Assembly: GCF_006345805.1 (NCBI RefSeq)
Contig: NC_043007.1
Coordinates: 72,912,001 to 72,976,000 of the forward strand
Length of the DNA: 64,000 nt
Reading direction: 5' to 3'
From: Octopus sinensis
Lineage: Eukaryota
Below the pieces are notes generated by a model. That model saw only the letters and a list, made by a program, of their open reading frames with translations, made no database searches and had not been told where the DNA came from. Positions 28,972 to 54,158 of the stretch are shown one piece after another (positions within the stretch are counted from its first letter, which is position 1; every line of letters begins with the position of its first letter). The translations under genes were made by a program, and so were the position numbers.

Positions 28972-29690
28972 TTATACTGATGAGTCATTGTACTCATTGA
29001 TCTGTTCCAACATATAACTTACAGGGACTGAAAAAATACTACGTTCACATCCATCTGAAAAGTTTGCACTGTAATCAGGCATTTCATTTAAAGATTCCAT
29101 TTTCTTAGGGCAAATATATTTGTCTTCAAACCAATTGGAATTATTTTCTTCAAATGTGGCAGCATTCTTAATTGTGTTTGTCAAAGAGTTAAATTTATGA
29201 TTGAGCTTGTTACTCTTGACACGAATAGCGAGCTCTTGATGCACTCTTGATCGATGGATTTTTTTAATAAGCGAGTTCAACTCTTTTGTAAGAGTGTAAC
29301 ACTTGATTGAAGGTAATTCACTGCTGATACTGGAGTTTGGTACCTGAGGAAACTTACAAATGATAAGTTTGTTGCTTGCATTAAGTTCTCTAAGAAGGGA
29401 AACTGTCAACAGTGCTGAGTTATCCTCTTTTAAAAAATTTATGTAATCTTGGTTGCTTTTCCATGCCTGAATTCTTTTGTGAAGAGCTTTGGAGTAAACA
29501 AGAATTATAAAATCAGACTTTTGAATTTCTAAACTCAGTCTTAATGGATCACCACCTTTCACTAGCCGAGCAGCAACTTCTAGTTTACATTTACTCTTAT
29601 TCATGAAAGATATAAACTTATCAATGGCTTCACAGTGGTAAGTATGGTCCTCTGTATAAAATAACAGCCCTCTTTTCTCTTGGAGTGTTC
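28972..29690 (-). CDS. IL-17 receptor-like protein, terminal exon with SEFIR domain
   Basis: Acceptor tattttcag at 29691. LLFYTEDHTYHCEAIDKFISF...EIQKSDFIILVYSKAL...LIICKF...CYTLTKELNSLIKKIH matches the SEFIR pattern (box 1 hydrophobic-Y-S/T-x-D-H; AD/SD-x-VIIVCS). Stop at 28972. Confidence 0.85.
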
Positions 29691-31229
29691 CTGAAAATAT
29701 AAATTCACACAATCAATAATAAAATATCAACAATATATGAGAATTAAAGGATTGAAATTCTTTAACTACATACAAGATCAACAGAATTAATCATACCATT
29801 TTACATGGCCCAGAAAAATAAAATTCTAAAACCAGCCACAATCAAACTTGAATTCAGAAAAGTGAGATTTCAAAATAGATATAATCATCTACAGAGGAAG
29901 TAAAGAAGTTATGTGGTCACTTGACATGCAAGAACTTTTAAATGTGACCTTAAAAAATGTGGCTGTCTAATCTTAATCTGATATCAGTTATTTAAACAAG
30001 GGTTATTGAGTTTCTAGAGAAATAGATCATTCCTAATAATAATAACTCTAAGCCATGTTCAAAGACACTTCACTTTACTAACTTAGTCACCAACTTCTTA
30101 AATTGATCTTTTTATGTGTTTCAGTTATTGGATTGTGGCCATGCTGGGGCAGTGCCCAATAGTTATTTTTTAAGTCTGGTACTTATTCTATCAGTCTCTC
30201 TTGCCACACAGCTATATTATAAGGATGGAGACAAACCAACACCAGTTCTCAAGAGATGGAGGGGAACAAACAAAAATACACACACACTGTCGATTTCTTA
30301 TAGTTTCAATCTTCCAAATGTACTCAGAAGGCCTTGGTTGGCCAAAGGCTACAGTAGAAGACATTTGAACAACAAGTCACACAGTAGGACTGAACCTAAG
30401 ATCACATTGTTTGGAAGCAAGCTTATATATCAATAAAAATATTCTCACATTCACACACACATATAAATAATGATAAGACAGGCTGTAAACTTTCATTCAT
30501 CGGAGAATCAAGGCTGTTTTATTTCACTGAACATTTCTGTGAATCTGTTGTAGTCCACCTAGCTGTAATAAGTATCTAATAAACCAATATCACAATTAGT
30601 TATAGTAGTATTACCATTACTGTCATGATTATTACAATCTCTGTTGATATATAATTATTACTTTGTCACCCATTATTGCTAATATAATCCTACTGCTGTT
30701 ATAACTAGTACCACCAGCACTTATTTTGATATTAGCAACCACAAGCTCTATCAATCATTCATTCTTCACATATATTCTAACAACCTTTACCTATCTTTCT
30801 TCATCCTTCTGTCTCTATGCTTTCTTCTATATTACCTTCTGGAACATGTTACCTTGAAGGTACACTCAAGTACCTCATCACCACAATCTCTCTTTTGGCA
30901 CCATTCCCTGTAACCCACCTACCCTTATATGAAATTGGGAAGCCTTGAATCTCCCCAACAGCAATAAACTTTTCTGGTTTTTCCCATCATATTTGAACCT
31001 CACATAAAACCAACTCATACTCTGATACTCTCTCTCTCAGTCTTGCAGATTACAAGGCAACATCACTAATGCTGGTGCCACCAGTACATATTTTCAAGTA
31101 GATGGCATAAAGAAGGCAATCCAGCCACAAGAACAATTGGAGAGAGATGTGATCCTCCAGTCTGTTGGATCTTGCTGAAATGATCAATTCATGCCAGCAT
31201 GGCAAGCGGACATGTTATGACCATAATAT

Positions 31230-34070
31230 TAAAGACTGCTTTAAAGATCGATGAGTTACCTCTTCTAGGTTCAGTAAAAAAGTCAGAGATAACAATGTTC
31301 TAGGATGCCCAGGAGGCTCCCTAGAAGTAGCAGATAGTTTCTGTTATCTAGGTAACCTAATTAGCAGCGGAAGCAGTGGAAGTATAGGATAAGGAGCAGT
31401 TAGAGAACTTTTAACTCTTTTAGTAACAAAAGTCCTCTCTCCCAGAGTGAAAGGCAGATTGTATGATGCCTGTGTATGAAACAGCAATGCTTTATGGTTG
31501 TGAAACTTGTTCTAAGAATTCAGAAGATATGTAAAGACTAGAGAGAAATAAAACTAACATGCTATGATGGACGGGTAATGTTAGTGTGCGTGTGCAACAA
31601 AGTACGTATGTACTGAAAGAAAAAATGGGCATTAGAATCATCAGATATTCTTGAACATATGCTGGGCAAGCCCCAGTTGTCTTTCATGGAGAGCATGGGG
31701 GCCATGGAATTGGTTCCTGAAATGAGGAGGGAACAAGGCTACTGGAGATCAGTGATGCAAATGACTTAATGATCTGCAACACCAACTTCAGAAAGCCAGC
31801 CAGTCACCTGATAACCTACAAATCTGGTGACCATGCTACACAGATTGATTACATTCTCACCAGAAAGTGGGATTCATGGCTGCTCATAAATGCAAAGACC
31901 TTCCCTGGAGAAGAATGTACCACACAGCATAGGTTACTCATTAGTTACTTCAAACTACTGGCACAAAGGATCCCAAGAAGCAACCAAGTTTCGAAAAAGA
32001 AGATATGGAAGCTTAAGGATCCTTTGAACAGTCAGAGATTTAAAGATGTCCTAAATGAAGCATTTAATGAGAAGGAGGAGGACTTGTAACATAGAGGATA
32101 ACTGGAAGCTCCTACAAGACAACTTACTGAGAGCTACAAACAAAATTTGTGGCTAGTGCAAAGTGCCAAACAGGCCTAAGGTGATGTATGGTGGAACAGT
32201 GTAGCTGACAGGGCCATCAGAGCAAAGAAACAGGCTTGGAAGGATTGGAAGGGTGTTGGTAGCAAGGAGCTAGATCAGGCAGCTAGAACGGAAGCTAGGA
32301 AGCAGGTATATTTAGCCAGAGGTAGAGCAAAAAGGAAGAAGTTGACCAATGTTCTGCAGCATGAGGACCATCAGCTTCAAGTGTTTTGGTTTGCAAGACA
32401 GTGTGCCAGGGAAAATTATGATGTGGGAGAGAAGTGTGCTCACATGGATAATGGTTCACTTGCATTTAGTGACTCAGCAAAAAGAGGCTTGAAAGTGCCT
32501 CTATGAAAGGCTGCTAAGTGTAGAGAACTCATGGGAGGAGGAGAGTCTGCTTATGGATCCAACAGAGGGACTATCAATCCAAATAGACAGAAGCATTTTA
32601 GGCAAAAATATGAAAGATATGAAGATGGGGAAAGCCTTCGGCCCATCAGGAATCACCACTGAGATGCTTAAAATATCTGGTGGTGTGGGCTATGGTTTAG
32701 TTGCCCATATATTTAAGCAGGTAGTACACAAAAAAGACATACCCAATGGCTGGTGTAGCAGCACCATAGTCAACTGCTACAAGGTGACACCTTAGATAGA
32801 AATAATTACAAAGGCATCAAATCGTTGGAACAAGTGATGTAAGTCACGGAGAGGATCATAGCCCAACTAATTAGGGAGAGAATTGGTTTAGATGAGATGC
32901 AGCTTGGTTTTGTGCCAGGGAAAAGGCACCTCTGATGCTACATTTCCAGAGTGGCAGTTGCAGGTGAAGTACCTAGCCAAAGATAAACTTCTGTACTTGA
33001 CTTTTGTTGACATGGAGAAAGCCTTTGACAGGATCTCCTGTTCCCTTATCTGGTGGTCAATGCAGAAACTAGGGATAGATGAGTGGTTGGTGAGAGTAGT
33101 ACAAGCTATGTACAAGGATGCAGTCAGTAAGGTGAGGGTTGGCAACAAGTATAGCGATGAATTCAAGGTAGAAGTAAGAGTTCACCAAAGATCAGTCCTC
33201 CACCCACCTCTTGTTCATCATAGTCCTCCAGGCAATAACAGAGGAATTTAAGATGGACTGCCCCTAGGAGCTCCTCTGTGCTGAGGATCTTGTTCTTAAA
33301 GCTGAATCACTACCAGAACTAGAGAAGAAATTTCAGGCATGGAGGCAATGCCTAGAAGCAAAGGGCCTCAAATGTGTATAGATGAGGAGAGCTGTGTAAA
33401 GAAGTGCTGATCTCTAACTGTAGAGGGAACCTGTGGAAGAGGTAGACCCAGGAAGACATGGGACAAGGTGGTGAAGTATGATCTTCAAATGTTGGGCCAC
33501 ACAGAGGCAATGACTAGTGACCGAGACATTTGACAATATGCTATGCTTGAGAGGAACCATCAAGTCAAATGAAATCACAGTTATGGCCAATGCCGGAATC
33601 ACATAACTGGTACCCATGTTGGTGACATGTAAAAAGCACCTTTCGAGTGTTGGGCCTCATGGAGGTAATGTGCAATGCTGGTGTCACATATCTAACACCT
33701 GTGCTGGTGTTGTATAACTAGCACCTGTGCCTTTCAAGAATCAGTCCTCACGGAGCAATGACAAATGACCAAGACCTTCAGCAATATGCCATGCTTGAGA
33801 AGAAGACCCATCAAGTTACATGAAATCCTAGTTGTGACAGCTACCAGTGTCATGCAACTGGCATCTATGCTAGTGGCACATAAAAGCACCCATTATACTC
33901 TCAGAGTGGTAGGCATTAGGAAGGGCATATAGCTGTAGAAACCATGCCAAATCAAACTGGAGTCTGGTGGAGACTCCAGCCTGCCAGCCCTGGTAAAACT
34001 GTCCAACCCATGCCAGCATGGACAATGGATGTTAAATGATGATGATGATGTTAATGATGATGATGATATT
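31230..34070 (+). mobile_element. Decayed RTE-clade LINE with 3' (GAT)n tail
   Basis: MICNTNFRKPASHLITY, QIDYIL, FVDMEKAFDRI and LIWWSMQKLGIDEWLVR; ends ...GGATGTTAAATGATGATGATG. Confidence 0.8.
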
Positions 34071-34332
34071 TACATTTCATTTGATTGCATTCACTTAACC
34101 TTTGCTAGTTCCAAATAGTTTTTTATGAAGAAACAGAAGATGAATATAATAATTTACTATACACAACTGTTATAAGATCACTATGGAATGATAAAAATTA
34201 ATCACCGAATTTTGAACTTCAGCTCAGTATAGTTTTTTGATAGAGAATGTCTCTGCTCTGCTGTTATTTGCAAACACTGGAGGTTGTGGCGACTGGGGTT
34301 CTCTGCTATTTAAATAACACAAATGAATCTAA

Positions 34333-34521
34333 CTAAATTTCAAACATTATCCACACAATGTGCCGAAAGAAACTACGATGGGGGCCCTCCAGGAGGTCCA
34401 GCATGAAGACCGTTTTCCCACACCCGGTCATTCCACAAATAATTGCAGAGTGGGGGCCCGGTGGAAAGAGTTGATGATACGAAGTATCAGTATAAGTTGA
34501 GCACTGAGACGAATCGGCCAT
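34333..34521 (-). pseudogene. Truncated A32/FtsK-like packaging ATPase (Polinton-type)
   Basis: PHSAIICGMTGCGKTVFMLDLLE Walker A motif, immediately downstream of the capsid frame. Confidence 0.75.
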
Positions 34522-35360
34522 CTTCGATGTTGAGCTGTGTGCCCATAATGATGTACAGGTAGACGTTCAATACACCCACGGCCTCTACCGCTTTCAGGAT
34601 CTGGATGGTCACACCCTCGCTGGCATTCTCAATGCGCCGGCCACTGCCATGGAGCTGGTCATTGTCCGTGGTGTGGAGGTCATGCCAGAGGGTGAACTTG
34701 GAGGTCAAGAACTACCCCAAAGACATGTCTTTAAGAGCAAGGTCTTTCACGACCATGGCCACCTCGAGATGTCACTTGCAGCCGGCGGCAAAGAACATCT
34801 TTGCTTCGACCCACTGCTGGTATGCATGCAGGCCTTGGCTGTACAGCTTGTTGGGGACCCCCTCAATGGTAACTTCTACGTTGGTTATCTTGGGGTTGTA
34901 GAAGGCCTTGGTGCCCCGCTGAAAGGCTTGATGCACAGCAACATCCTCAAACAACAACAGAATGCCCTTCATCGAGCGAGCAGGCATGTTCAGGTTAACG
35001 TTCCACAAAGTGTTGCTCTTGTTGGTTGCAATTTTGCGGTACCGCAGTACACGGTCGTACAGGATGGCCAGGCAGCCACTGTACTGGTTGCGGATCATCC
35101 TTGCCAGTTCAGGGAGTGTGACCATGTCATACTCCAGGCAGATGTTTTCAATGGAGTAACTGGGGTTAGCATCTCCAGTGGCCTGGACCATGAGGGAGTA
35201 GTCGTTAAATGTCAACTCCTACTCGAGCCTATCACCAAGTGCTGACTGGTAGAAGGGCATATGGCTCTCTAGAAGCTTGAAGTCGAGGGGAATGTAGAAG
35301 TGGTTGCCATAGGCTTCTACAATGGCACCGTCAGCTCCACCTGAGACACCGTCCCCAGCA
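34487..35360 (-). pseudogene. Polinton/Maverick-type major capsid protein, C-terminal part
   Basis: One continuous frame with three in-frame stops: FYIPLDFKLLESHMPFYQSALGDRLE*ELTFNDY...YNPKITNVEVTIEGVPNKLYSQG...LHGSGRRIENASEGVTIQI...YLYIIMGTQLNIEDGRF. Recognised as similar to invertebrate Polinton capsid proteins from memory. Confidence 0.75.
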
Positions 35361-35365
35361 CTCAC

Positions 35366-35800
35366 TTGAAGTTTGGTGACGTTCCAGTTGATGAACACGA
35401 TGTAGCCACAAAAAGGTATGTCGATAGCCGGAAGCCTCTCATAACCATGTGGGCTGAACGAAGTGGCACTCTTGGAACGGGCCAATATGAATGGTCATTC
35501 GGTGCTGGTGCTAATCTACCAATGCATGGCTACAACATGATGGCTGCAGGCAGGGTTCACCGAATGCGACTAACTGTAACCAGAGTTACCACTTCCCCGG
35601 GCACCATAGCAACGGTCAATATTGTGGTTAACGGGATAACATACATCATATGGGGTAACCTCAGACCAATACTCTGGTACTAATACATTTGGGACCCCAC
35701 TATAGCTTGCCCAATGCGACCGAGTAAGCTTCAGGTCAGCTACGACCAACGCTGATGTCCTCACTGCGTTTTAATTGAACTCGACCTGTAGCTTTGCCAT
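35366..35800 (+). pseudogene. Polinton-associated fibre/minor-virion-like protein fragment
   Basis: DEHDVATKRYVDS resembles the DAATKxYVD motif of viral fibre proteins, followed by beta-rich sequence; frameshifted. Confidence 0.45.
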
Positions 35801-35817
35801 AGTTACTCCATAACATC

Positions 35818-36510
35818 ATGAAGCAAGCAACTGCTCCACCAGCTGATAGCACATCAGTTAACAGCGAATCTGCTGGCAAGGCATACATCACACTAAGTTG
35901 TACGCCAACACTTTATCCACATCTGCCTTATCTCATTGATACTGCACAATCCCACTCGCTTCAAGAGGTCTCACAACTGGAAAAAGAACGACTTGAAGAC
36001 GAGAGGGACAAACAGGGTCAACTGTACAAAAAATACTGCCATGGGGTCAATGTTGTCGATGGCGTTGACACAGTGTTGGGGATGGGCATCGGTGGTGTGG
36101 GCCTTCTGTCTACCATTATTGTGGCCCCAGTAGTCTTGGGCCTTGAAATTGCGGCCCTGGCATGTGGCAGCCTTGGAGTAATAGGCAAGTTTGTTGGCCA
36201 CCGTCTCACAGTCAAAGCCAAAAAGCATAACGAGGTCAGACTCCTGGCAGAGAGCAAGCTGAATACCATCGCAGACCATGTCTCGAGTGCATTCATGGAT
36301 GGTTGAATCTCAGATGAAGAGTTTCGCCTCATTCTTGGTGAGCTCAACAAGTATGATCAGATTAAGGCAGAGATCCAGGCTGGAGCTAAAAAAGCACATG
36401 CTTCAGTGAAACCTCCGGTGTTGGATGAAGAGATAAAAAACTCGCTTATTCAGAGAGGCTGGGATGAGGTCAGGGCCAGTTTCATAAAGAAGTTGGTTGC
36501 ACCATAATCT
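35818..36510 (+). pseudogene. Polinton-associated hydrophobic helical protein
   Basis: ERDKQGQLYKKY...GVDT...LLSTIIVAPVVLGLE...KAKKHNEVRLLAESKLNTIADHVSSAFMDG*ISDEEFRLIL: one stop, frame continues to about 36510. Confidence 0.55.
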
Positions 36511-37331
36511 GCTTTATGAGGCCAAAAAGAGCACCACACAGCCTGCTTCCATACACCGTTACTCTGTAACTATCACAGCTTTCAGCCACTTTTTTATTTA
36601 TGTTCCCTTTGGGCCACCATACTGCTGTTATGACATCGTCATGTTTACTTCCTGGTTCAGCCATGTGCTATGACTACGTCATGTTTACATTCTGCCTTGT
36701 GCTATTATTTACTTCCTGTCCCACTTTGAAAAACCACAAGCATTTCACATAGCTGCATCAGCCTTCTAGAATGTATCGGAATATACATAGCTATGGATAG
36801 CAAAAAGGGCTGTTAAGTGGTGCTAAGTGCTGTTAAGGGCTGTTAAGTCTGTCGGTTTATATAAGCTGTAAATTAGTTGTCACACCTCCTAGACCGTGAC
36901 AAGTTTCTATCAGCGTGACAGGAATATCATAGCATGACAAAAATGGATGTAGACAGACCAAAAAAGAGAGTTTTCTCGTTTTTGGAGCAAATAGTCAAAG
37001 AAACAAACGTGTCTAAAGGCAAAGCACGTCCGGAATTGGCCAGAAAACTGAATGAACGAACAAGACATCTACAGTAAAGGAGAAAACAGAGAGAGAGGCT
37101 GAAAAAATAGCAATGGACTTAGAAACCACGGAAGCTCAAATACAGCTGGTCAAGGAGGACATTCAAAGGCTAGAGTCTGTGGTAGAGGAAGGGACAGATG
37201 GTGAGGATGAGTAAATGCCTCAGTCTTTCGGCTGTTAGTCTCAACAGTCCTATATGTGGAACTCTGATTGCTCCCACTTGATGGCCTATTCATGTAATGG
37301 AATGGGTTCAGGCACACTGACACTACCAGGA

Positions 37332-37382
37332 GCCATTAATACCTGCCAGGTGTTCTGATGAGGCCTTACAGGCCGAAATGGC
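37332..37382 (+). ncRNA. Type III hammerhead ribozyme fold
   Basis: GCCAU-U / AAUACCU-GCC-AGGUGUU / CUGAUGA / GGCC-UUACA-GGCC / GAAAUGGC: complete core with three helices; predicted cleavage after 37337 (AUU). Confidence 0.75.
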
Positions 37383-39819
37383 ACAGAGGTGAGTCATTTA
37401 TAGCTATTCTAGGGTTTGGGGTAAACCCTGGTTGTCGAGCTCCCCTGCTGTAAATATAAGCCCTTAGGCTGGCAAGGGGTCGTCCACCCTATGGCGAAGC
37501 TATAAGGCTCCTATTGGTACTCAGTATAGTATAGGGTTGGGATTACAAACGTGTATCATTGGGCTGGGGCCTGCCAGGGGTGTGGGGCGGGCCCTATCAT
37601 GTGATCTGTCCCAGAACCCCCACTAGATGTATATCTGGCTCCAATCCCAGCTTCCTACGTAACTGAGCCTGGTGGACCCCACACAATTTATTGATGCACT
37701 GTTTCCCGCAGCGCTTGGTCCACCCAACGACCAACCACTCGCATCAATTGTACTCAATCATACTGTTGTTTATACATAAGGCAAGCATTTGTCTAAATAA
37801 AAAATCGAACAGAGTATAAGCAGCCTGAGGTTAGCTGGGGCTATGTGGAAAATGGGCTGGACCCTATCATGTGATCTGTCCCAGAACCCCCATTAGATAT
37901 ACTACTCTTGACTGGCTTTTATTAATGCCTCCAACATGAACGATATATTTAAAAATCATTTGCTAGCAATGGGTTTCTGTATTTGGCATAAACTATTTAT
38001 GTGAAAAAAAAAGAAAATTTCAAAGATGAAATATATGAAATCTATATATAGGTCGATTTTAACAATGTTAATAAATGCAATCAGTTTCCATTTCAGGAAT
38101 TACAAAATTTGAACCACAAATTAGCAATATTTTGCCTACTCACACCTAAAAAAATTCCCGTTCTCATTGACTGATTATACATGGATATGTATGTAAAGAT
38201 ATATAATTGTAGGATATCACTTTTTCTCTTATTCTTTCTTTTTCATTATCTCTCATAATACAGAATATAACTGAAACTATCATCCTTTTTTTCAGTGTTG
38301 CACAGTGAGATCTTTATGAATATTAATTGCGACTGTGTTTTTTCTTTGAAGCTAAAAATTGTCTTTTCTTGGGTGGATTTTCCACCTAGCTCCTAAACTA
38401 TCAAAATGTTATATGAACAATTCAAATGCTAATAATACTTAACAGGTACAGCATTTTCCTTGTGAACTGTTAACAAGTCTTAAGTGCAGCCTGGCAATAA
38501 CACTATTTAAATGTTACACCATATAAAACGAAAACAAGCTCACGATGTGATTTTACAAAACTATCATTTCTCATAACCCGTTAGCGCCCATGGTCCTTTT
38601 TTTTTTTTGGCCCAGAAGGATCACGCATCTGTAGTAAGAAACTTTGTAGCAGATATATTTTGAACAGAAATCAACTAGATTTGTTCTGTGGAAATTTTCT
38701 TCTGACGCTAAAATACAAGTTTAGACAAAGATTTTTTTCATTGACTAAGAAAATATTAACCGAAGCCATCCTAGTTTTCAACCAAAAATTGTTCTGAAAT
38801 TTTAGTTCCTGGACACTCCAAAGTAGCTTATAAAAACCCAGGATTTCCAATATATTTTTAGTGACATCTAAGCTGCTACAGGAGAATTTGTCCTCACATC
38901 TGCATGTCTTGAAGTGGTGAATTATTTTTCAAACTCATGAAGTCGCCCTTGCATTATCTGTATTCTCCATCATGACCTTAAGTAATTTACCTAAATTCTT
39001 CGTGGAGCAGTTTGAAGAATTAGTTAAGAAATTTAATACTCGTCATTCTTCTAGACAAGTAAATTCTTAGAAGAAATTAGGAAAAGCCTTTTATCACCTG
39101 CCTTCTCGTAAATCTTAAAGTAAACTAAGGGAGAGCACCTGTTATATTTATAATACAGTTAAAACTATTGAATTTGAATTAAATAAAAATAACATTGAAT
39201 AAAATCTTGCGAGTCAGATTTCTATAATTTCTTGAGTATTGGTTTGAAAACAACCTGCAGGTTACTCACAAATAATTTTAACCACAAAAAGAAAAAAAAA
39301 ATAATCAGCAAAGAAGACAGGTTAAACATCATATTTCTGCAACACCTGTATTTTTCTGCGATATCTTTAGTCATCAAGACTGGAGTGTTTTTCAAATATT
39401 ACACCTAGTGTCTGATGTATATTGTCAACACTGATGTCTCAATTTTCAGTACGGTGTGAAAATCTTGAGGGAAAGGATACACTCAGTTTCAATCAAAAAC
39501 TTTTTGATAAGTAGTACTTATATCCAACCCATATTTGTATATAGTATAAACAATTGTTCTAACTGTCCAATAAAGTTAAGAAAATCTTTGAAAGTAATTT
39601 TGCTCAAATATAGCATGCTCTAAATGTTTGGTCCTAATATAAGGAGCATGGTCACTAGAACTCCATTTTTTCAATTTTCTATGGAAGTTGCATAAAAGAG
39701 AAAACAATCTGCAGAGATAAACTTTTTTATGCTGAAAACATTTTCTATGTATAGACAGCTGTGAAAAAAAAATTGTTCTTTTCTTTCTTTATTATTCTAA
39801 TTTTAGTTTTATTTTCAGA

Positions 39820-41047
39820 TGTTCTCCCATGGTTTTCTACCATTCAGTCAAGTCATTCTATTCAGTTCATGGTACAGTAAATTATGCAGAAGAAAATGAG
39901 TCTCCTAGTGATGAAAACTTTATTGATATTGTTGAACTTCCTCCACCAGTAAATGAACTGACTGATGAAGAAGACTTTGATGATGAGATTTTAGATGATG
40001 AGAACAGAAATCTAACCATTATCTTGTAGGATGTGCCAGAAAGTGTTGAGCTTCATCGGTATGATAATGAAGAAGTAACATAACCAAAAGGAAAAAAAAA
40101 AAGAAAAGCTCAGATTTCTCTTGGAAAAAGACTGATTTTTCCAAATTTGCATCACCAACTACTGATGGAGCAGATGATAGAATGAAATCAATGAAAGATA
40201 AAGTACTTGGCAAGAGCCAAGTTGAGATTTTTTAATCTCTGAATCAGAAGTTCAAGCAGTTTGGAATATTCTTTAAGAGGCTGTCAGTAGATGAAAACAT
40301 AGTAAGATACTATGGAAGAAGCTATCTAAAACAATTTATAAGAGTAAGCCAATAAGATTTGGTTTCAAGAAGTGGGTGCTTTGTTGTGCCACTAGTGGCT
40401 ATTATTTTAGAATGGATTTATATCAAGGAAAGCAAAAAAAAATCCTACTTCCAATACCAGGAATGATGACAGTCTAGGTTCAAGAGTCGTTTTATCAATG
40501 ACCAATCACTTAGAGAACCCCAATGATCATGAAATTTATGTTAACTTTTTCTCAAGTTATAACTTTAGGAATCAGAATCATGGGTACAGTATATTCAAAC
40601 AGAACATCCAGATGTCCCATGAAGGATAACAAATCCAGGAAAAAGGAAAATCATGGATCCTATGACCACAAATTTGAAGAAAAGGAAGAATTCTTTGTTT
40701 TGAAGTGGCATGACAACAGAATTTTCACAATTGCAAGCAATCATCAGTCTGCCACCCCTGTTGGAAATACTAAAAGATGGTCAACCAGCCATAGAAAAGA
40801 AATATTTGTTCCTCAGCCATTTCTCATAGCCAAGTATGACAAATATATGGGAGGTGTGGACCACTTAGACTGGCTTATCCAAAAGTATCACATCTCTGTT
40901 ACATGTAAGAAGTGGTACTTTAGTCTATTCACAAATTTCCTCGACACTATAATAGTTAATTCTTGGATTGTACACTGTTTTGCAAATGGAAATACTTTGA
41001 CATTACTAGACATTACTAGATTTCAAGAGGTCAGTTACACAAGCTAA
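39820..41047 (+). pseudogene. Decayed piggyBac-type transposase
   Basis: Acidic N-terminus (LPPPVNELTDEEDFDD), LSVDE, KPIRFGFK, LKWHDN, YDKYMGGVDHLDWLI..Y and KKWY...NSWI. Confidence 0.8.
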
Positions 41048-41869: not shown

Positions 41870-44330
41870 CATATAATTCATTTGAACTAAACGTTTCACC
41901 TGAAAGGTTTTCATCCTGAGGGTGTTCTTCAGTACTTCATCCTTCATCTTTCTGGGTCTCCCACTTCTATGTGTTCCATCCACTTTGAGAGATCAGCACT
42001 TCTTTATGGAGCTGTCGACATCCACCCACATCACATAATTGAACCAGTACAGTCTTCTCTCTTGCACACAGCAACTAATTCCTCTTATGCCTAACTTCTG
42101 TCTCAGAACACTAGCACTCCGTTAAACATGTACACTAACACTACACATCCAGCGGAGCATACTTGCCTCGTTCCTTTCTAACCTTTGCATGTCCTCTGCA
42201 TTTAGGGCCTATGTCTCACTACCATGTAGAAATGCTGTCTGAAACCAAAGAACAAAAGGCCAAAGGAAAACGAAAAAAAAAAAATGTAGTCAACACCAGA
42301 GCTGAAGACACCTCCAAAATGGGGAGGGGCCCCACATGTTGACAACGGTAGAGGAGTAAGGGCCGAAACCAGATGTGGTTCCTCTTGATGATGTCCTTAG
42401 CCATTGGATCCTATAAAGAATCTGTTGAGATAACGAACCATGAAACATGGTTGGAATTCCTCCATGGTTTTCCTTTCACTTGGAGTCAGTAACGTTTCAT
42501 GGCCAACAGAGGTAGCAGCTCTCTGAATTTCTTCAATTCTATTCTTATTCTAGCTATCACTCACTCCATGCATCCTCCCCCACCATTAATTTGATCCCCT
42601 AGGTAGCAGAAATGATTTCCTACCACTAATGAACCACCAGAGCATTTGAGAGAATCAACTTCCTGAGTCTCTATAGTTTTTATAGATCCTGTGCATCTTC
42701 CACATATGAAAGCTATCTTCTCTGATAACCTTCTTATTAATCCACTGCACTGATTGTGTGTCCATAGCTTATACTGGGTACACCATATGGAATTCTTGCC
42801 TATGCCTTTCCTACGAATCAAACAGGGTCACCCACCTGACTTGGGCAGGATCCTGTCAGTATTCTTGCTTACTAGGACCTTAGATTTTGCTATGTTAACT
42901 TTAAGGCCACACCTGGAATTTCTCATCTAGCTTTGATATGAAATCCACTACAAGAGCAAGACCATCAGCATATAGTAGTTCCCAGGGTCTGCTTGGCTTG
43001 AATTCCTCTGTTATGGCCTGAAGGACAATGATGAAAAGGAGGAGACTAAGGATTGAGCCTTGATGAGCCCCTACCTTTGAACTAAATTCTTTACTGTACT
43101 CTTGGTTAATTCTCACCTTACTAACAGCCCCTTTGTACATGGCCTGTACAGCTTTCATCAGCCTCATCAGAGTCCACCACATCACACAGTGGGGCACTTG
43201 ATCAAAGGCTTTCTCTAGATCAACAAATTCCAAGTATAATGGTTTATTCTTAGCTAAGTACTTCTCTTGAAGTTGCCAGACTGAAAATAGCATCAGTAGT
43301 GCTTCTTTCCCAGACAAAGCTGAACTGCATTTCGTCTAGCCTATGTCTGCTCCTAATTGATTGGGCTATAACTCTCTCTGTAATTTTCATCACCAGATCT
43401 AGGAGTTTGATGCCTCTGTAATTGCTTCTATTTAGTGCATTGACCTTACTCTTGTAGCAGTTAACAATTATGCAGCTATGCCAGTCACTGGGTATTACAA
43501 CTTCCTGAATGACCGGATCAATTATGTGGGTGACCAGCCCATATCCTACCTGACTGGATATTTTAAGCATCTCAGCTGTGAATCTGGATGAACCAAGGGC
43601 TTTCCAGATTTTCAAGTTTTCAATTGCAATATGTACCATACAGCCGTCCACTAGATCTCTCTATTGGGTTTAAATGAGGAAGACTCCCTTTATCCCATTC
43701 ATTCTCTACATTCAACAGTCTTGCATAGTAACTTTTCCATGCTTCTTTCTTGTCCACATCATTAAGTGCAAGCATACCATTATCCATCTGCACACACTCC
43801 TCTCCTACAATATCTCAATTCTCACTGACACACTGTCTGGAAATCTGGAAAACTGATCTTCATGCTGTAGGACTTTGGCAAACCTCTTCCTTTATGCTGA
43901 ATAGACCTGGCATCTAGCCTCCTTTTTAGCTTTCTGATAAGATTTTTTCATACCCTATTTTCCACTCTTTCCAGGCTTGTCTTTTCTCTTTTATGGCTCT
44001 GTTAATGTCACTAGCCCTTAGTAGATTGTCCCCTAAGAACTTCCAGTTGTCCTCTACATCATATGTCTCTATCTCTCCTTCCTTCTCATCATAGGCGTCA
44101 TTGAGGACATCTCTAAATCTCTACCTACTTGAGGGATCCTTGAGCTTCCACAGCCACCTTTTCCATGCTGGATTGCATCTCAGAATCTTTCTGGCCCAAA
44201 ACCTGAGGTCACTCATCACTAGCTTATTTTGAGTTGTACATTTTGCATTTATGGGCATATATCTATCCATGTGTTTGGTGGGGATGTAGTCAATCTGGCT
44301 ACTGTATCCTCCTTATAAAGCAACCCTTTA
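41870..44330 (-). mobile_element. Decayed RTE-clade LINE
   Basis: NYRGIKLLD, YLEFVDLEKAFDQVP, HQGSILS and WELLYADGL, with many disruptions. Confidence 0.8.
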
Positions 44331-44663
44331 TTTGAAAATAATATTCAATCACTATTTTCAAATTGTGACCTCACTGTCTGTTTTATCTACCACTACTATC
44401 TGCTGCTCATCAGAACTGGCTGGCTACCCATCATCCTAATTCCTCCCATTATATATACTGTCTTATTTCCCATACATCCATTAAGCACCTTACTCATTAC
44501 TTCAACCATCATGCAACTATATTACTCTGAAGCTCCCACAGATCTTATATCCATTCCCCATCAACCTTTGATGCTGATTCCCAAACATTTTATGCAAAAT
44601 ACACAACATATAATCTGCATTTTAATAATGATTTTTCTTGGGCATTATTTTAGTTTTGCTTAC

Positions 44664-44766
44664 CTGTAAAATTATTGGTCTTTGACCGATTACATGTGTT
44701 ACAATATTCATATAATTTACATATACATTTCTTACTATCATTCCAAAATTCATCAAATATTTCAAC
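44664..44766 (-). CDS. IL-17 receptor-like protein, Cys-rich membrane-proximal ectodomain exon (103 nt, phase 0-1)
   Basis: Acceptor tttttttctttttaaag, donor gtaagc; VEIFDEFWNDSKKCICKLYEYCNTCNRSKTNNFT. Confidence 0.82.
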
Positions 44767-45648
44767 CTTTAAAAAGAAAAAAAAACACATCTACTGAATA
44801 AATATTTAAATAAACAAACAAATGAGAAAGAAGCTTCAATACTTTCATCATAACATATCCTTGTACTTTAACCTCACATCTTTCTTTCTTTCCAGTTGGG
44901 GAAGCCACATGTATTCACCTCTTCAGCAAGACACCTACCCCTGTCCCTCTGACACACTTTCACCTCCCTCAATACTATACTTCACTTGTGATTTCACAAG
45001 TGCTGGTGCCACAGAAAAAGCACCCAATACACTTTGTAAAGTGGTTGGTATAAGGAAGGATATCCAGCTGTTGAAACCATACCAAAGCAGATGTAGTTTG
45101 GCACAACCCTCTGGCTCATTGGTTCCTGTCAAAATGTCCAGCCTATTCCAGCATGGAGAAAAAGACATTATATGATAATGAGGGAGATGATCATCCTAGC
45201 AAGGAAATAACGAATGCAAGTAGTCTTAAAGTTCTACTTCTTCAGACAACAGAAGCAAGACAATGTATTGTTAGAGCCCAAACAACATTAATCAAATCCA
45301 AAATTAATTTTAAATGATTTCTCAAAATTCTGTAAAAAATAATTTTTTTAATGGAGTTCTGAGGGGATCATTTCTAACATGTGCAATAAAAGAAATCTTA
45401 CATGGAAATTAATCTGTAGAGGCCAAAGCCAGTTGAAGGGAAGAGCACCACATTTAATAACATACACTTTACCCATAAACACTTCAAGATAACTCTTACC
45501 GGCCTTACAGCGAACCCAACCAACGGACATAACTCCAAGCCTAATCCCCTGACCCTTTTTCACAGCAGCCACAAACTAGATGTGTTAATTCACCTCTGAC
45601 AATAGAGAGCAGTTGTCATATTCCCTTCCATATCAGCTAACTCTGATG

Positions 45649-46163
45649 AACATAAATCCTCGAGTATAGTCCACCCTTGAGTATAATACGCAGGGGATTT
45701 TTAGGGGGCTGTACCTCTGAAAAACCTAAACCTTGAGTAAAATACGCACCCTTTCTCTAACTTGAGTCAAGGAGGTCTATATAACTTCCTTGGTTTGTAA
45801 AAATGTATACGGTAACATCCTTTATTATTATTGTATATATAACATAATGCAAACATGTAGCTTTTGTGTGCATTTTGTTTGCAGAAAATAAAGAAATAAC
45901 AGTAATAACGTTGAATAAATGTTGCTTACTGCAAGTTATGGATGATTCTTCTATGACTTTATTGCTTTCAGGCTTAGCTTAAGGTATTTTCATGCACAAC
46001 ATCACAAAATGCGTCTGAATAAACATTGCCAGACAGCAAATAGAGACGCGGACATTGCTTAGAAAATAAGTTTCATTTTTAACCTCATATATAGTACGCA
46101 CTAGGGATTTTGACCTTTAAAGTTTTGGGAAAAAATGCGGATTATACTCGAGGATTTACGGTA
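45649..46163. mobile_element. Tigger/pogo-type MITE
   Basis: Termini ..CATAAATCCTCGAGTATAGTCC and GCGGATTATACTCGAGGATTTACGGTA are inverted; no ORF. Confidence 0.75.
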
Positions 46164-46346
46164 ATCAGATTGTTACCAAACATTCCATTGTATTCCTTGT
46201 GTGAAACCAATTGGTAAGCTCAGCCATGATGGATATATAATACTGTGCATTTTAGATAATATACCCACTCTATTAACAGATATGCAAATGCATTCTTTCC
46301 CTGACTTATAGACTCTTAGATGACTTATGTATGTACACACACATAT

Positions 46347-46577
46347 ACAATTGCAGCATGGAAGATGTTTGTAAGCCATTTAAGAACACACAAAAACCAT
46401 TAGCTTCACTTCAACATTTAAATTTAATTTGTGTCAAAATATTTTTGTCACTTTGAAATCGTAACCTGTTCACAGAAAAAACTTTGTGGACACAAATTAA
46501 ATTCAATTGTTGAAGTGAAACTAATGGTTTTTGTGTGTTCTTAAATGGCTTTCAAACATCTTCCACACTGCAATTGT
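46347..46577. repeat. Foldback/hairpin MITE-like element
   Basis: About 95-bp imperfect inverted arms (ACAATTGCAG..GGAAGATG..AAGCCATTTAAGAACACACAAAAACCATTAG..) around a short spacer. Confidence 0.85.
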
Positions 46578-46697
46578 TTTTGTTTCAGCACACGATATCA
46601 GATCAAGTCACTTAATATGCAAGTACATCTCCATAACATGCATGCATTCATGTATGCATGCATGCATACATGCATACATACATACATACATACATAT

Positions 46698-47112
46698 GCG
46701 CAGGAGTGGTTGTGTGGTAAGTAGCTTGTTTACCAACCACATGGTTCCGGGTTCAGTCCCACTGCGTGGCACCTTGGGCAAGTGTCTTCTATTATAGCCT
46801 CGGGCTGACCAAAGCCTTGTGAGTGGATTTGGTAGACGGAAAATTAAAGAAGCCCGTCGTACATATGTATATATATGTATATGTATGTGTGTGTGTGTGT
46901 GTGTGTTTGTGTGTCTGTGTTTGTCCCACTAGCATTGCTTGACAACCGATGCTGGTGTGTTTATGTCCCCGTTACTTAGCGGTTCGGCAAAAGAGACCGA
47001 TAGAATAAGCACTGGGCTTACAAAAGAAAAAGTCCCGGGGTCGAGTTGCTCGATTAAAGGTGGTGCTCCAGCATGGCCGCAGTCAAATGACTGAAACAAG
47101 TAAAAGAGTAAA
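46698..47112 (+). mobile_element. Full-length tRNA-derived CORE-type SINE
   Basis: A-box-like TGGTTGTGTGGTAAG, B-box-like GGTTCAGTCCC, CCTTGGGCAAGTG core, and LINE-like 3' tail ending in AAGAG repeats. Confidence 0.9.
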
Positions 47113-48342
47113 GAGTACATACATACATGTATTCATTCATGTCCTCCTTCCATACTGGAATGGGTTGGATAGTTTGACAGGAGCTGGCGAGGCAGCAGCC
47201 TGTACCATGCTTGTGTCTGTTTTGGTATGGTTTTTACAGCTGGATGCCCTTCCTAACACCAACCACTTTACTGTGTGTACTTGGTGCTTTTTTTGTAGCA
47301 CCTGCACTGGCAAGGTCACTAAGTAACTTTGCAAGATGAGGAATCTTTGAAAGAGGAGGGGGCATTGGAGGTGATCTTGTGTTAGATGATGAAAAGTTAG
47401 AGTGTGACAGAGAGACAGAAACAGATGTCTTGCTACAGAGAAGGTACATGGTTACCCAGCCAGAGAGAGGGAGAGAAAGAGGGCAGAAACAGGTGTGCTG
47501 CTGAAGAGGAGGGACATGGTTACATAAGAGAGAGGGTGAGTTAACAAGAAAGAGGTATGCTGCTGTAAAGGGGATACATGGTTACCTAGCCAGAGGTAAG
47601 AGCAAGAGAAAGAGGGAGAGAGAGTGATCAAGAATGAGGGCAAAAACAGGTTTGTTGCTGTAGAGTAGATATATGATTACTCAGCCAGAGGGAAAAGCAA
47701 GGAAAAGAGAGAGAGAGAGAGAGAGAGAGTAGGAAACAGCAAGAACTGGGGATGGATGGCAATATGTGTCAAGGTTTATCACATCCAGCAGAGCATACTG
47801 CCTTCATTCCTCTCTAGCCTACACATGTCCTCTGTATTCAGAGCCCATGTCTCACTACCATGGAATATAGCCATTTGTACACTAGCTTCAAGCAAGCTAC
47901 CTTTTACTCTGAGAGAGTCCTTTAGTTGCTAACAGAGGTAGTAGCTCTGAACTTTCCCCATCTTATTCACATTCTAAAAACAATACACTCAGAGCATGCT
48001 AAAGATGAGATTCAGCAATAAAGATATTGAAGCTTGTTGGTGGGAATGTCTCTGGTAATGTTGTGGGAACTAAGATTATTCAAATATTGACATGAAAATT
48101 GTAATCTTAGATATTTTCTTTTTTGCTTAAATTTAATCAACCTTGGTCTACAGTTCTATATTTAACAGATGAGGAATTATGTACATTATTTACATTATTT
48201 GCACTTGATGGATATTTGTCTTCATCTTCTTTGTTATTAACACGTCTCAGCTGATATACTCTCCATCCTTTATCAAGTGTCTTGGGGAAATTTCAAACCT
48301 GGATTCTCATTCCTAAGGTATTTTTCGATGTTGTTGTTGTTA

Positions 48343-48383
<41 letters not shown>

Positions 48384-48989
48384 ATTATTCAGGTCATTGC
48401 TTGGAATCGAACTTGAAATCTTGGGGTTAGAAGCCTGTGCTCTTAACCACTATGCTATTTTATAATTTTTCATTAAAATGTTCTCAGCAGAACATTTTAT
48501 CGCAGTTTTGTCTGGGATTAACATCATTGAAAAACTGCAGGTAAAATATATACAAGCTTATTGCTCTCTTCTCTAAACTATTTTCTTAAAGATCTCATTT
48601 TAAACATGCTGTCATCAACTATTACCATATTCTACATGAAAAAAAGAAATATAAATTTCATATCATTCAAATATTATTTTGATATGAACAAATTAAAAAT
48701 AAGTTTTGAAGAGGCTCTGCTCAATTATTTTATATCTTTATTCCTTCGTGTCTTTTACAACAACAACAACAACAACAACAGCAGCAGCTACACCTGCAAG
48801 AACAACAACTGCACAACTGCAAGAATAGCAGCAGAAACAAAACCAGCAACAACAACTGAAAAAAACAACAGCAGCAGCTACAACTGCAAGAACAACAGTA
48901 GAAGCAACAACAACAACAACAAGAATAACAGAAGAAGCAACAACAATAACAATTACTATTACAGCAACAGATGCTGCAATCTAAGAAGA

Positions 48990-50560
48990 GTAAGTTGTCA
49001 GGAAATGCTGAAAAAATGTTCTTGCTGGATAACGTTGCGAACTTGATAACAGAGTTTTTTTAAGTATAAACCGGAGAAAGGAGTTACCTATAGAAGATAC
49101 AAACAAATCTTCAATAAAGAGTGCAAAGATTGGGACGGTGGTATGAAAACATGTTTAATCTATCTTACGAAAACTGGCAGCAGGAGAACATGAGCGTTAT
49201 AGCAATTACATATTCCTGAAAAAAAACCTTCTGACATAAACTTTAAAGATACAATAAAGATATAGTGTAAAATTTTGAGTGAGAAAAGCTTGTTATTCAA
49301 TACACATTGGAAATGTTTGAACCTAGAAAAGAACGAGGAGGACTACATCACATATGCTGGTAGAGTTAACAGGGAATGTGAAAAGTTCAAGCTGGATAAA
49401 TTAATGCCAGATATGTCCAAATGCCTGATATTTACTCAGGGATCAACTGCAAAGAAAGATGCTGAAGTAAGAACAAGAATTCTTGCTAAGCTGGAACAAA
49501 ACCAAGTGTCAGAAGAATGTGAAAGAATAGTAAATTTAAGACACAACACAGAGAAAATTGGTCATAAAGATTGCTCCCAAATGAAACAAGTGTGAAATAG
49601 GCAGAATAGAAATCAAGTGTGTACTAAAATATAGTACAAACAGGACAAGAATCAGGGAAAAAAAACCCCATGTTTTGCATGTGGAGGTCTACACCTGAGG
49701 AAAAACTATCCATTTAAGAAAACAGGATGCTTCCACTGTGAAAAAATTGGACACGTAAAAGCGCACTGTAAAACCAACATCACAAAACATTGGAACAAAG
49801 AAAAATGAATAAACAGTATGTCATTGAAAGAAAATGGTAAAAAGAAAATTCGTAAATGTGAAAATCTTTATATATAAAATTGAAGTTGTGTGTGTGAGAC
49901 CCTGTCTCCTCCGATTTATATTCCTAACTACTCCCACATTTTGCGGTACAGTTTAACCAAAAGCGGGTATCTTATAGTCGTGATTCATATCGAGCACTTC
50001 TGGGCATTAGCACGTGTCTACGATGAATCTACAATTTAAAAAAAAATTTACCATCATTTTTCCGCATTTTTAATGATATTTGCTTGGGTTATATAAGGGA
50101 AGGATCTCTCTAAAAATGCTTATATGGTTATTTCCCTTACAAACCCGAGCAACGCCGGGCGATACTGCTAGTTACAAATATAAGAGTAAAAATGCAGTTA
50201 GACACTGGAAGTGATATTACCATTGTAAGCGAAAAAACATTACAAAAGTAGCATATGGTGTTACAGGTAAAAGACTGTATTTTGTCGGTGAATTTCATTT
50301 AATGTAACAGTTTGTGACCAAATTAAAATGGCAAAAATTTATGAGCTAAAAAATTCAGTTAATCTATTCGACACAGAGTGGATGGAACAATTCAAATTGT
50401 GGAATATGCCCAAAAATGTTTTGTGTGGGAATATAGTCAGTTCAGTTGAAGGTTCAAATATGGCTGAGGGATTGAAACAAAAAATAAAACATTTCCAGAT
50501 ATTTTCTCGGAGTAACTGGGCTGTTGCATGAAAAGTAGAAAAGCCTGTAATAATGGGTGA
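48990..50560 (+). mobile_element. Decayed Ty3/Gypsy gag-protease fragment
   Basis: Gag-like ORF 49275-49595, zinc knuckles CFACGGLH...CFHCEKIGHVKAHC, and protease LDTGSDITI. Confidence 0.8.
49865..50171 (+). mobile_element. Non-autonomous Helitron-like element
   Basis: A|TC...CCCGAGCAACGCCGGG-CGATACTG-CTAG|T; no TSD. Confidence 0.85.
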
Positions 50561-50931
50561 GGTGTTAGAAGCCTGTAAAATTTAGAAATTTAGAAACAAG
50601 ACTATAAAACAGTAATGAAAAGTCGAGTCAACTTATACAACTAATGCAAAGTTTGGAAAAGAAAAAAAGTCCCTAGTTTGGTAAAGAACTGATAGCAGTA
50701 AATCTATGAGTATGTGTATAAGTGTTTGTCATGGAAGAGACAAGTTTTTTTTAATTACATAGCGAGTGGAAAGTCCTGAGAACTTGAAAATGTGGAAAAT
50801 TCCACGAGAAGGAAAGTCAGGGAACATATACAACAACGATTTATGCAATTATCCTATTTAACAGAATTCCTTTTAAATGTAATAATGTAACAAAATGTAG
50901 TAAACAAAGACCAATATGGAGAATAACTTAC

Positions 50932-50991
50932 AGTTATGTAGTAGTTTCCATCACATATTCCAAGAAATTCCTGGGTTAGATTTGGGGTTAT
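50932..50991 (-). CDS. IL-17 receptor-like protein, ectodomain exon (60 nt, phase 0-0)
   Basis: Acceptor (t)n-cag, donor gtaagt; ITPNLTQEFLGICDGNYYIT. Confidence 0.8.
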
Positions 50992-51729
50992 CTGAAAAAA
51001 AAAAAATAATAAAGTTGGCCTATAAATAGATTCTCTGAACATTTTTCATAATAAATCTATAATTTTCAAAGATTTGAAACCTGGTGTAACTATAAAATAG
51101 AATTTTAAAATATGCCAATTATTCTGGTCTCATTAAATTTGGTGAAATGATTTATATTTTACTGAATTCAATGGTTAAAATTAGTTTTAGTCAAGATAAA
51201 AATCAGTAATTTAATAGTTGAAATAACAAAAAAATAAAAATAAAACAAAATGGATTTTTCTAGTAATAGTATTGATATGCCCAAAACAATCATTCTTTAC
51301 ATAATTACATCATGTAAAGCAAAATAGCCACAAACTAATTTTCTTTGTTTTGTTTTAAAGCCAGAACTAGATCCGTTAGAGAAATGGGAAAAAAATTTGA
51401 ATACTAAGTTTTATGGCTAAAATTCACTGAAAATAATAAGAATGTGTAGAGTGACAAGACAAGGGAGTGTATTGAAGCAAAGTTACATTTATTACAGATA
51501 TTACAAAATAGTTAACATCAATATAGTCAAAAATAATTTACCAGGACAAATCAGTTAAACAATGCAATGGAATAAGTTTTATATCATTGAGTTTGACTAA
51601 AAACTAATTAATGGGTAATATGAATGAAGATAATGAAATAAAGATTAGAAAAAGAAGAAATATTTTCTCTAATTATTATTGAAGATTAGAGGAATTTTAA
51701 AAACACTGAAATTGTGAAATTTGACAAAC

Positions 51730-51884
51730 CTCGGAAGCCACCGCTTTTAAATGGGGTAAATTCATATGAAAAATTGATACTTTATATCTTTTTATATCAC
51801 ACTTTGAAGGTCCTTCTTTAAAATTCACAATAATGTTGTTCCCTTTTTTTTGATAACGAATAGGAGTTGTCCATTCACGACATG
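51730..51884 (-). CDS. IL-17 receptor-like protein, FnIII-like ectodomain exon (155 nt, phase 1-0)
   Basis: Acceptor ccctttacttttgcag, donor gtttgt; CREWTTPIRYQKKGNNIIVNFKEGPSKCDIKRYKVSIFHMNLPHLKAVASE. Confidence 0.8.
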
Positions 51885-53800: not shown

Positions 53801-53824
53801 TTTATTTAAATGCATTCATCTGAA

Positions 53825-53827
53825 TAT

Positions 53828-53876
<49 letters not shown>

Positions 53877-54003: not shown

Positions 54004-54050
<47 letters not shown>

Positions 54051-54127: not shown

Positions 54128-54158
<31 letters not shown>

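Follow-up and report, generated by a model that had tools for sequence, protein, structure and literature searches.

A predicted short-form IL-17-receptor-family gene without a D1 domain in Octopus sinensis

Among described receptors, the closest counterparts of the gene reported here are the ILCR-1-type receptors of lophotrochozoans and nematodes, i.e. C. elegans ILCR-1, the 'interleukin cytokine receptor-related protein 1' of Magallana gigas and Mytilus edulis, and mussel IL17R-A to F. These proteins are 650-860 amino acids (aa) long and consist of an N-terminal D1 domain (IL17R_fnIII_D1/ILCR1_N), a membrane-proximal domain (D2; Ig_ILCR1, PF23608) with a C-x-C...C..C tail, a single transmembrane (TM) helix, and a SEFIR domain followed by a helical extension that ends in a P/N-x-W-F motif. 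In C. elegans, interleukin-17 (IL-17) acts in both immunity and neural signaling. In vertebrate complexes, ligand sites 1 and 2 as well as the receptor-receptor tip-to-tip contact lie in D1, and site 3 in the inter-domain linker and D2 loops (PMC9477748). An expansion of the octopod IL-17 ligand family is known from the literature (PMC8353272, PMC8257504), and with 31 genes that of Octopus bimaculoides is among the largest known (PMC8353272). The receptors for these ligands are unstudied so far; among cephalopods, IL17R was reported only in nautilus by a genome paper (PMC8257504). Here, we analyzed a 64,000-nt stretch of the Octopus sinensis genome (contig NC_043007.1, forward-strand positions 72,912,001 to 72,976,000; hereafter, the window) and found it to contain most of an intact Octopus gene. 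Judging from sequence comparisons and structure models, we read it with considerable confidence as a short-form IL-17-receptor-family gene encoding a predicted type I membrane protein, likely an accessory or modulating chain.

An earlier note on this DNA had proposed five exons with AG/GT borders and phases 1-0, 0-0, 0-1, 1-1 and 1-stop. Direct reading of the minus strand bears this out: a pyrimidine tract and AG precede each of the five, GT follows the first four, and the phases are compatible throughout. Scripted splicing joined them into a frame of 396 codons that is open to a TAA stop, with the other two frames full of stops. A 16-nt micro-exon further upstream had been missed. The coding features of the window are as follows (aa positions refer to the 396-aa fragment).

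57294-57279, minus strand: micro-exon, 16 nt, ACACAGGCGGAAGTAT; codes for T-Q-A-E-V plus the first base of Ser and joins the signal-peptide exon to D2 exon a
51884-51730, minus strand: D2 exon a, 155 nt, donor gtttgt; aa 1-51, first half of the Ig_ILCR1/FnIII-like domain
50991-50932, minus strand: D2 exon b, 60 nt, donor gtaagt; aa 52-71
44766-44664, minus strand: D2 exon c, 103 nt, donor gtaagc; aa 72-105, Cys-rich C-terminal part of D2, including a 42-bp hypervariable tract
41591-41436, minus strand: stalk and TM exon, 156 nt, donor gtgagt; aa 106-157, Ser/Thr/Pro-rich stalk, then transmembrane helix
29690-28972, minus strand: last coding exon, 719 nt; aa 158-396, juxtamembrane linker of 6-8 residues, SEFIR and an IL-17RA-like helical extension ending in NWFE
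28974-28972, minus strand: TAA stop at the end of the last coding exon, preceded by a C-terminal tail

These exons are real rather than a chance assembly, because tblastn with 12 octopod homologs against the window recovered exactly the five larger exon blocks and no other match, the best protein match reached E = 1e-256, and the same exons are found at the O. vulgaris locus. In a search of 5.8 billion proteins, all relatives were from octopods, the best being O. vulgaris CAI9729975.1 ('hypothetical predicted protein', 423 aa, 97% identical). The corresponding O. vulgaris gene, CAI9729974-6, has three modeled isoforms of 431, 423 and 357 aa, and the O. bimaculoides ortholog LOC106875972 has two (X1/X2; 424 and 412 aa). 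The orthologous O. vulgaris locus (L001, OX597824.1:34,592,415-34,663,933) is collinear with window positions 19-62.7 kb in reverse orientation, with 95-99% nucleotide identity (97-99% over the long exon-bearing blocks), and keeps all five exons with the same lengths and AG/GT borders.

The micro-exon is flanked by the acceptor ttttcag and the donor gtaagt, and its phases (0 in, 1 out) fit D2 exon a. Its sequence is identical between the window and L001 positions 32820-32835 and corresponds to residues TQAEV(S) of CAI9729975.1; the counterpart residues in O. bimaculoides LOC106875972 are TQEVK. Thus, the statement that the 5′ exons were not identified does not hold for the micro-exon, which lies within the window, but it does for the signal-peptide exon, which lies outside. 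In O. vulgaris, the protein begins with MERFSTVVILALLFICNLADN, followed by TQAEV and then S-CREW; the signal-peptide exon maps to ~17.9 kb in L001 and ends in ...GATAAT before the donor gtaagt, and the predicted signal peptide MERFSTVVILALLFICNLA is seen only in this ortholog. Neither tblastn (word size 2, E up to 50) nor a scan for ATG, hydrophobic stretch and phase-1 donor found a credible signal-peptide exon in 51885-64000; one candidate at 62678-62621 (MIAILSVILQSLVSAFDSA) was dropped as unrelated to the signal peptide of the ortholog. By collinearity with O. vulgaris, the exon should lie at least about 10 kb past position 64000. In O. vulgaris, the exon annotated as the first (from L001 position 10001, starting 'MVVVVKDT') sits inside a copy of a long interspersed nuclear element (LINE)-type element, and this upstream start is therefore probably spurious.

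In the O. sinensis RefSeq annotation, the gene is represented only by a 204-aa partial model (LOC115216983), which is identical to the window product at 203 of 204 positions and spans the TM/SEFIR junction. The model stops at '...DYINF', at a point where the window has six T (AAT TTT TTA; T run at 29433-29441 in the SEFIR exon) and five T would read AAT TTT TAA. Because the protein ends exactly where a T run shorter by one base would create TAA, its truncation may stem from a difference in homopolymer length, either error or polymorphism. The gene had been called cryptic, a label that we drop: it is annotated in O. vulgaris and partly in O. sinensis, and, having already been modeled in public octopus annotations, appears under-annotated in the latter species instead. 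UniProt labels the octopod models by domain, and databases otherwise list them as 'uncharacterized' or 'hypothetical'. A literature search found no paper on cephalopod IL-17 receptors; the gene is predicted in public annotation but has never been studied.

Joining of the exons into one transcript is supported indirectly by independent models from O. vulgaris (CAI9729974/5/6) and O. bimaculoides (LOC106875972 X1/X2). Alternatively, the SEFIR exon might belong to a transcription unit other than that of the D2/TM exons, from which 11.7 kb separate it. A second O. vulgaris copy of the gene (copy B/C, see below) is indeed annotated as two genes (P0115 and P0111), and intron retention as well as transposon-derived terminal exons have been modeled after the TM exon (P0115, P0012). 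Yet the phases fit across the TM/SEFIR junction, the same junction is present in the models of O. vulgaris gene A (the ortholog at L001), O. bimaculoides LOC106875972 and all long-form paralogs, and the O. sinensis partial model crosses it as well; the transposon-derived alternative exon, moreover, lacks an AG acceptor in the window. We consider separate transcripts highly improbable.

Pfam searches with the 396-aa fragment detected Ig_ILCR1 (PF23608) at aa 3-104 (54.1 bits, gathering score 27; 2e-14; profile positions 2-114 of 114) and SEFIR (PF08357) at aa 166-300 (24.9 bits, gathering score 23; 2.7e-5). A missing SEFIR hit was one of two refuting outcomes that the earlier note had named, the other being transcripts that do not join these exons; the SEFIR check was passed. 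Among 12 octopod family members, SEFIR was found in 11 and Ig_ILCR1 in 10. The order of parts is that described in the note, with a Cys-rich, FnIII-like ectodomain (aa 3-104), a Ser/Thr/Pro-rich stalk (aa 106-133), a transmembrane segment (TISLAIIGAMIILLLLALSFYCF, aa ~134-156, then KR; modeled as a helix at 131-158) and a first SEFIR strand starting six to eight residues on (aa ~163). Together with the signal peptide of the O. vulgaris ortholog, the one transmembrane helix suggests a type I single-pass topology.

An exhaustive profile search of 1.84 billion representative sequences yielded 101 relatives. The non-octopod members of this set are proteins of 650-860 aa from bivalves, gastropods and annelids with the architecture IL17R_fnIII_D1/ILCR1_N, Ig_ILCR1, TM and SEFIR, some of which RefSeq calls 'interleukin cytokine receptor-related protein 1'. 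Profile-profile alignment (hhalign) of the octopod family with 16 canonical mollusc and annelid IL-17R-like proteins gave a probability of 100% (E = 1e-55, 494 columns) and spanned D1, D2, TM and SEFIR up to a common '...NPxWF' motif. Searching the PDB sequences with the single protein or with a 12-sequence octopod profile returned nothing useful, indicating the family to be highly divergent. A 36-sequence profile matched the human IL-17RA SEFIR (4nux, 8e-16), the IL-17RB/RA construct of 9ot1 (2e-28), IL-17RA ectodomains (~4e-11) and the IL-17RB SEFIR (3vbc, 8e-8). A further profile search for homologous proteins added only one octopod sequence.

Structure prediction points in the same direction. 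An AlphaFold model of the whole fragment, based on 12 sequences, had a mean predicted local distance difference test score (pLDDT) of 52.6 and was informative for the FnIII ectodomain part only (about 75); in Foldseek searches, the ectodomain model matched FnIII folds, among them IL-17RA (4hsa, 3jvf). The product of the last exon, modeled on a 45-sequence alignment, reached a pLDDT of 84.6 and a predicted template modeling score (pTM) of 0.79. The top three PDB matches of this cytoplasmic model were two chains of the IL-17RA/RB/ACT1 assembly 9ot1 (template modeling score (TM-score) 0.62-0.65, 223-230 columns) and 4nux, a crystal structure of the IL-17RA SEFIR (TM-score 0.72), with the IL-17RB SEFIR and TIR domains ranking next. 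As Pfam, profile-profile alignment, PDB profile matches and structure models agree, the assignment to the IL-17-receptor family can be regarded as secure, and the divergent paralog that the note had suspected appears to be just that.

Like the ILCR-1-type receptors, the predicted octopus protein combines Ig_ILCR1, a single TM helix, SEFIR and the terminal helical extension; unlike them, it has no D1, a SEFIR match of 25 bits (50-93 bits in theirs) and a linker of about 6-8 residues in place of their juxtamembrane segment of 20-58 residues. With vertebrate IL-17RA it shares the SEFIR fold with its C-terminal extension, the profile aligning '...CPDWFE' of IL-17RA with 'NSNWFE' of the octopus protein, as well as an FnIII-like D2 ectodomain. 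It differs from IL-17RA in lacking the D1 contacts and the long C-terminal regulatory tail, and identity in the structural alignment is ~12-13%.

The TM segment ends in F156-K-R and the first SEFIR strand starts from ~residue 163. In canonical relatives, the juxtamembrane segment comprises 11-58 residues, with 29-58 in mussel IL-17 receptors (PMC8353272), and hhalign indicated a ~55-residue insert of the canonical proteins to be missing from the whole octopod family. The more distant IL-17R-like protein CAI9729820.1 of O. vulgaris has a spacing of 9 residues. By these comparisons, the compact juxtamembrane region that had been taken as a mark of this paralog is real but family-wide, rather than specific to the window gene.

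What sets the gene apart within its family is the missing D1. Long-form octopod paralogs are 549-570 aa long and have an extra N-terminal domain of ~140 aa, which in one member matches IL17R_fnIII_D1; in the O. vulgaris long-form gene L003, D1 is encoded by three exons. From D2 on, the long forms have the same exon plan, the same short linker and a cytoplasmic identity of 78-86% with the short form, but they carry the three extra D1 exons, and the short-form D2 is only 49-59% identical to theirs. The following long-form paralogs were found.

O. vulgaris: CAI9729972 and P0008, P0007
O. bimaculoides: LOC106873178, LOC106875974
O. sinensis: LOC115232311
Argonauta hians: LOC115217573, LOC115217394

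No D1 exon remnants were detected by tblastn in window positions 51885-64000 or in O. vulgaris L001 or L002, and the ortholog models have no D1 sequence between signal peptide and D2, indicating D1 to be truly lost from the window gene and its orthologs. Neither the absence of D1 nor the micro-exon had been part of the earlier note. We also asked whether the micro-exon might be what remains of the final D1 exon's 3′ end, with which it shares phase 1 and a similar peptide ('AQEV' in the D1 exon, 'TQ(A)EV' in the micro-exon); an alignment of the DNA gave no convincing match, and the idea is speculative. In neighbor-joining trees of D2 and of the cytoplasmic domain, the window protein, O. vulgaris P0001 and O. 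bimaculoides P0002 formed one clade, and three long-form orthogroups were resolved. Given the single clade of the short forms from three Octopus species, the loss of D1 predates their split, and the short form has been retained since. The gene evidently belongs to a tandem cluster with three long-form (D1+D2) paralog lineages, and its product is predicted to be a D1-less variant of the IL-17 receptor kind. With further relatives in Argonauta, O. bimaculoides and Sepia, the sequence data show coleoids to possess IL-17R-like genes that are divergent enough to sit close to detection thresholds.

The variation between copies is unevenly distributed along the gene. Between the window and its O. vulgaris ortholog, 12 of the 13 amino-acid differences precede the cytoplasmic domain, and the ratio of nonsynonymous to synonymous substitution rates (dN/dS), which here rests on small substitution counts, amounts to 1.72 (ectodomain) and 0.12 (cytoplasmic part). 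O. vulgaris has a tandem short-form duplicate ~85 kb downstream (copy B/C; L002, OX597824.1:34686909-34738870, and L004, 34739017-34749933). The annotation breaks it into two models (P0115/P0012 and P0111), i.e. a gag-like (DUF7041) plus Ig_ILCR1 model and a separate SEFIR model; when its homologous exons are joined, they give one open frame with canonical splice sites. O. vulgaris copies A and B/C differ as follows.

Introns flanking each exon: 1-2% divergence
D2 exon a: 14 of 155 positions, 9.0%
D2 exon c: 16 of 103 positions, 15.5%
SEFIR exon: 2 of 719 positions, both synonymous, 0.3%

D2 exons a and c together show 30 differences in 258 positions as compared to 17 in 1200 of flanking intron (p = 1e-12), and the SEFIR exon has diverged less than the intron next to it (p = 0.03). 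For D2, 29.8 nonsynonymous and 2.2 synonymous changes correspond to a dN/dS of 3.65 (Fisher p = 0.026), again from few substitutions. The variable D2 positions fall into two groups, one at aa 39-50, modeled as a loop plus strand, and one at aa 89-105, where D2 ends in its Cys-rich part. The second group includes the 42-bp tract in exon c (44673-44714, aa 91-105), where the window differs from O. vulgaris L001 (45836-45938) by 10 substitutions between identical flanks. Of these 10 sites, 7 are shared by the window and O. vulgaris copy B, and 5 by the O. vulgaris allele and long-form L003 (47816-47916). That positive selection alone had separated O. sinensis from O. vulgaris in this patch was rejected in part; the paralog matches favor short-tract ectopic gene conversion within the receptor cluster, which seems the better reading. 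Be it by conversion or by selection, variation is concentrated in D2, with the cytoplasmic domain remaining strongly conserved. The tandem repeat unit of the receptor gene is probably present in the O. sinensis genome too, since window positions 10.8-16.5 kb resemble the region upstream of O. vulgaris gene A.

Such a pattern bears on whether the gene is a decaying duplicate, i.e. a long-form IL-17R-like gene that has been left without function and without D1 exons, is drifting, and owes its annotation only to a frame that is still open. D1 is gone, transposon fragments occur throughout the locus, the O. vulgaris sister copy B/C is represented by two broken models, one of them fused to a gag-like retrotransposon domain, RefSeq gives O. 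sinensis a truncated model of 204 aa, and an ectodomain dN/dS of at least 1 is also expected from relaxed constraint. However, drift is not expected to leave the cytoplasmic exon less diverged than the flanking intron, and this exon shows 0-1 amino-acid changes as against 2 synonymous ones. The D2 exons, in turn, have diverged five to nine times faster than adjacent introns, which is above neutrality. Since every copy has intact frames and splice sites (six exons in the window, O. vulgaris A and joined B/C), the window species shares the retained short form with O. vulgaris and O. bimaculoides, and conservation is higher in the SEFIR exon than in its introns, a pseudogene is unlikely.

We propose that the protein consists of a signal peptide, the five residues of the micro-exon, a single D2 (FnIII/Ig_ILCR1), a glycosylated stalk, the TM helix, a very short linker, and SEFIR with an IL-17RA-like extension. 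Its conserved SEFIR would recruit an Act1/CIKS-type adaptor through SEFIR-SEFIR contact and thereby signal, as suggested by the conservation of this domain. Without D1, the receptor would have neither IL-17 sites 1 and 2 nor the D1-D1 tip-to-tip contact, so that canonical assembly would be impossible and the ectodomain would offer only a D2 'site 3'-type surface. Most likely, the short form is a signaling-competent accessory or modulating chain that may pair with long-form paralogs, or whose diversifying D2 loops may bind an expanded octopus IL-17 ligand or another fast-evolving partner.

In a different scenario, the D1-less protein would act as a dominant-negative or decoy receptor, its SEFIR sequestering the adaptor or pairing unproductively with long forms and so damping IL-17 signaling. 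The lack of D1, and hence of sites 1 and 2 and of the tip-to-tip contact, fits such a role, as does the very short linker that would keep SEFIR against the membrane. Vertebrate IL-17RD (SEF), a single-pass SEFIR receptor with orphan or modulatory behavior, acts mainly as a negative regulator and offers a possible functional analogy; IL-17RD keeps a full ectodomain, though, and nothing matched it specifically in sequence or structure. The short linker is common to the long-form paralogs rather than particular to the D1-less protein, and so strong a diversification of the ectodomain is not expected of a pure decoy. We regard this scenario as possible but doubtful.

A similarly tentative proposal goes further than an accessory chain: the D1-less receptors may form a lineage-specific, tandemly duplicating and fast-diversifying sensor family that signals through an invariant, membrane-hugging SEFIR. 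Positive selection would diversify the single ectodomain, together with gene conversion between paralogs that is confined to exons, and D2 diversification would track the ~31 expanded octopus IL-17 ligands or non-self molecules. If so, this would also account for IL17R having been found only in nautilus among cephalopods in the published survey (PMC8257504).

Several points count against the reading as an intact accessory or modulating receptor chain. The joining of the exons rests on gene models annotated in other species, and the 5′ end, with the signal-peptide exon outside the window, is seen only in the O. vulgaris ortholog. The SEFIR score barely exceeds the Pfam threshold, and the first whole-protein model was poor (pLDDT 52.6). 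The dN/dS values derive from small counts, and D2 seems to owe at least some of its divergence to short-tract gene conversion from a long-form paralog rather than to selection on point mutations. Finally, a D1-less chain could equally be inhibitory.

Octopuses carry a tandem cluster of divergent IL-17R-like genes, which are concrete candidates for how IL-17 signaling is organized in a large-brained invertebrate; as in C. elegans, IL-17 may act in both immunity and neural signaling in octopus. Within the family, the short form is unusual in keeping a highly conserved SEFIR after losing the domain responsible for most ligand contacts and all known vertebrate receptor-receptor contacts, and it lets one see, as a natural experiment, what an IL-17 receptor with only D2 is capable of.

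As the earlier note had stated, the introns contain transposon debris; present are reverse-transcriptase (RVT_1) fragments, a piggyBac remnant and kilobase-scale AT arrays. Mobile and repetitive elements in and around the gene are listed below.

40523-41044, plus strand: piggyBac-type transposase remnant (DDE_Tnp_1_7, E = 3e-18), in the 11.7-kb intron before the SEFIR exon
42904-43317, minus strand: reverse-transcriptase fragment (RVT_1, E = 1.8e-8), in the intron between D2 exon c and the TM exon
32892-33248, plus strand: weak reverse-transcriptase fragment (RVT_1, E = 2e-4, below gathering score), in the intron before the SEFIR exon
8288-11012 (minus), 20203-20937 (plus), 25455-26690 (plus) and 3436-3828 (minus): LINE-type open reading frames (ORFs; endonuclease, reverse transcriptase) flanking the gene
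53824-54926, 55325-55749 and 56153-56484: (AT)n/(TA)n microsatellites of about 170-560 repeat units, in the intron between micro-exon and D2 exon a
20958-22462 (~30 copies) and 23008-23339 (~6.6 copies): 50-bp satellite arrays with 81-85% matches, downstream of the gene and also at the O. vulgaris locus

The alternative terminal exon of the O. vulgaris paralog model P0012 derives from a piggyBac-type element, read from its antisense strand. In the region of the piggyBac remnant, window positions 40069-40022 (minus strand) encode a peptide 100% identical to the last 16 residues of P0012. A SEFIR-less isoform ending in such an exon was discounted for the window, which has GG where the AG acceptor would be needed. 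The AT microsatellites, for their part, produce spurious 'ORFs' of Y/I/C/V repeats.

An assembly gap of 100 N lies at 62731-62830. The 1170 bases that follow it (62831-64000) are a 99.66% direct repeat of 52425-53595, 10.4 kb away and just upstream of D2 exon a; in O. vulgaris, this sequence is single-copy. The repeat across the gap most likely reflects haplotype overlap, falsely duplicated where scaffolds were joined, the alternative being a very recent tandem duplication. Located 10 kb downstream of the receptor gene, an intact ATG-initiated ORF of 537 codons (17110-18723, plus strand) has the Spin-doc zinc finger (zf-C2H2_12, E = 1e-7) as its sole Pfam match and could be either transposase-derived or a host zinc-finger gene.

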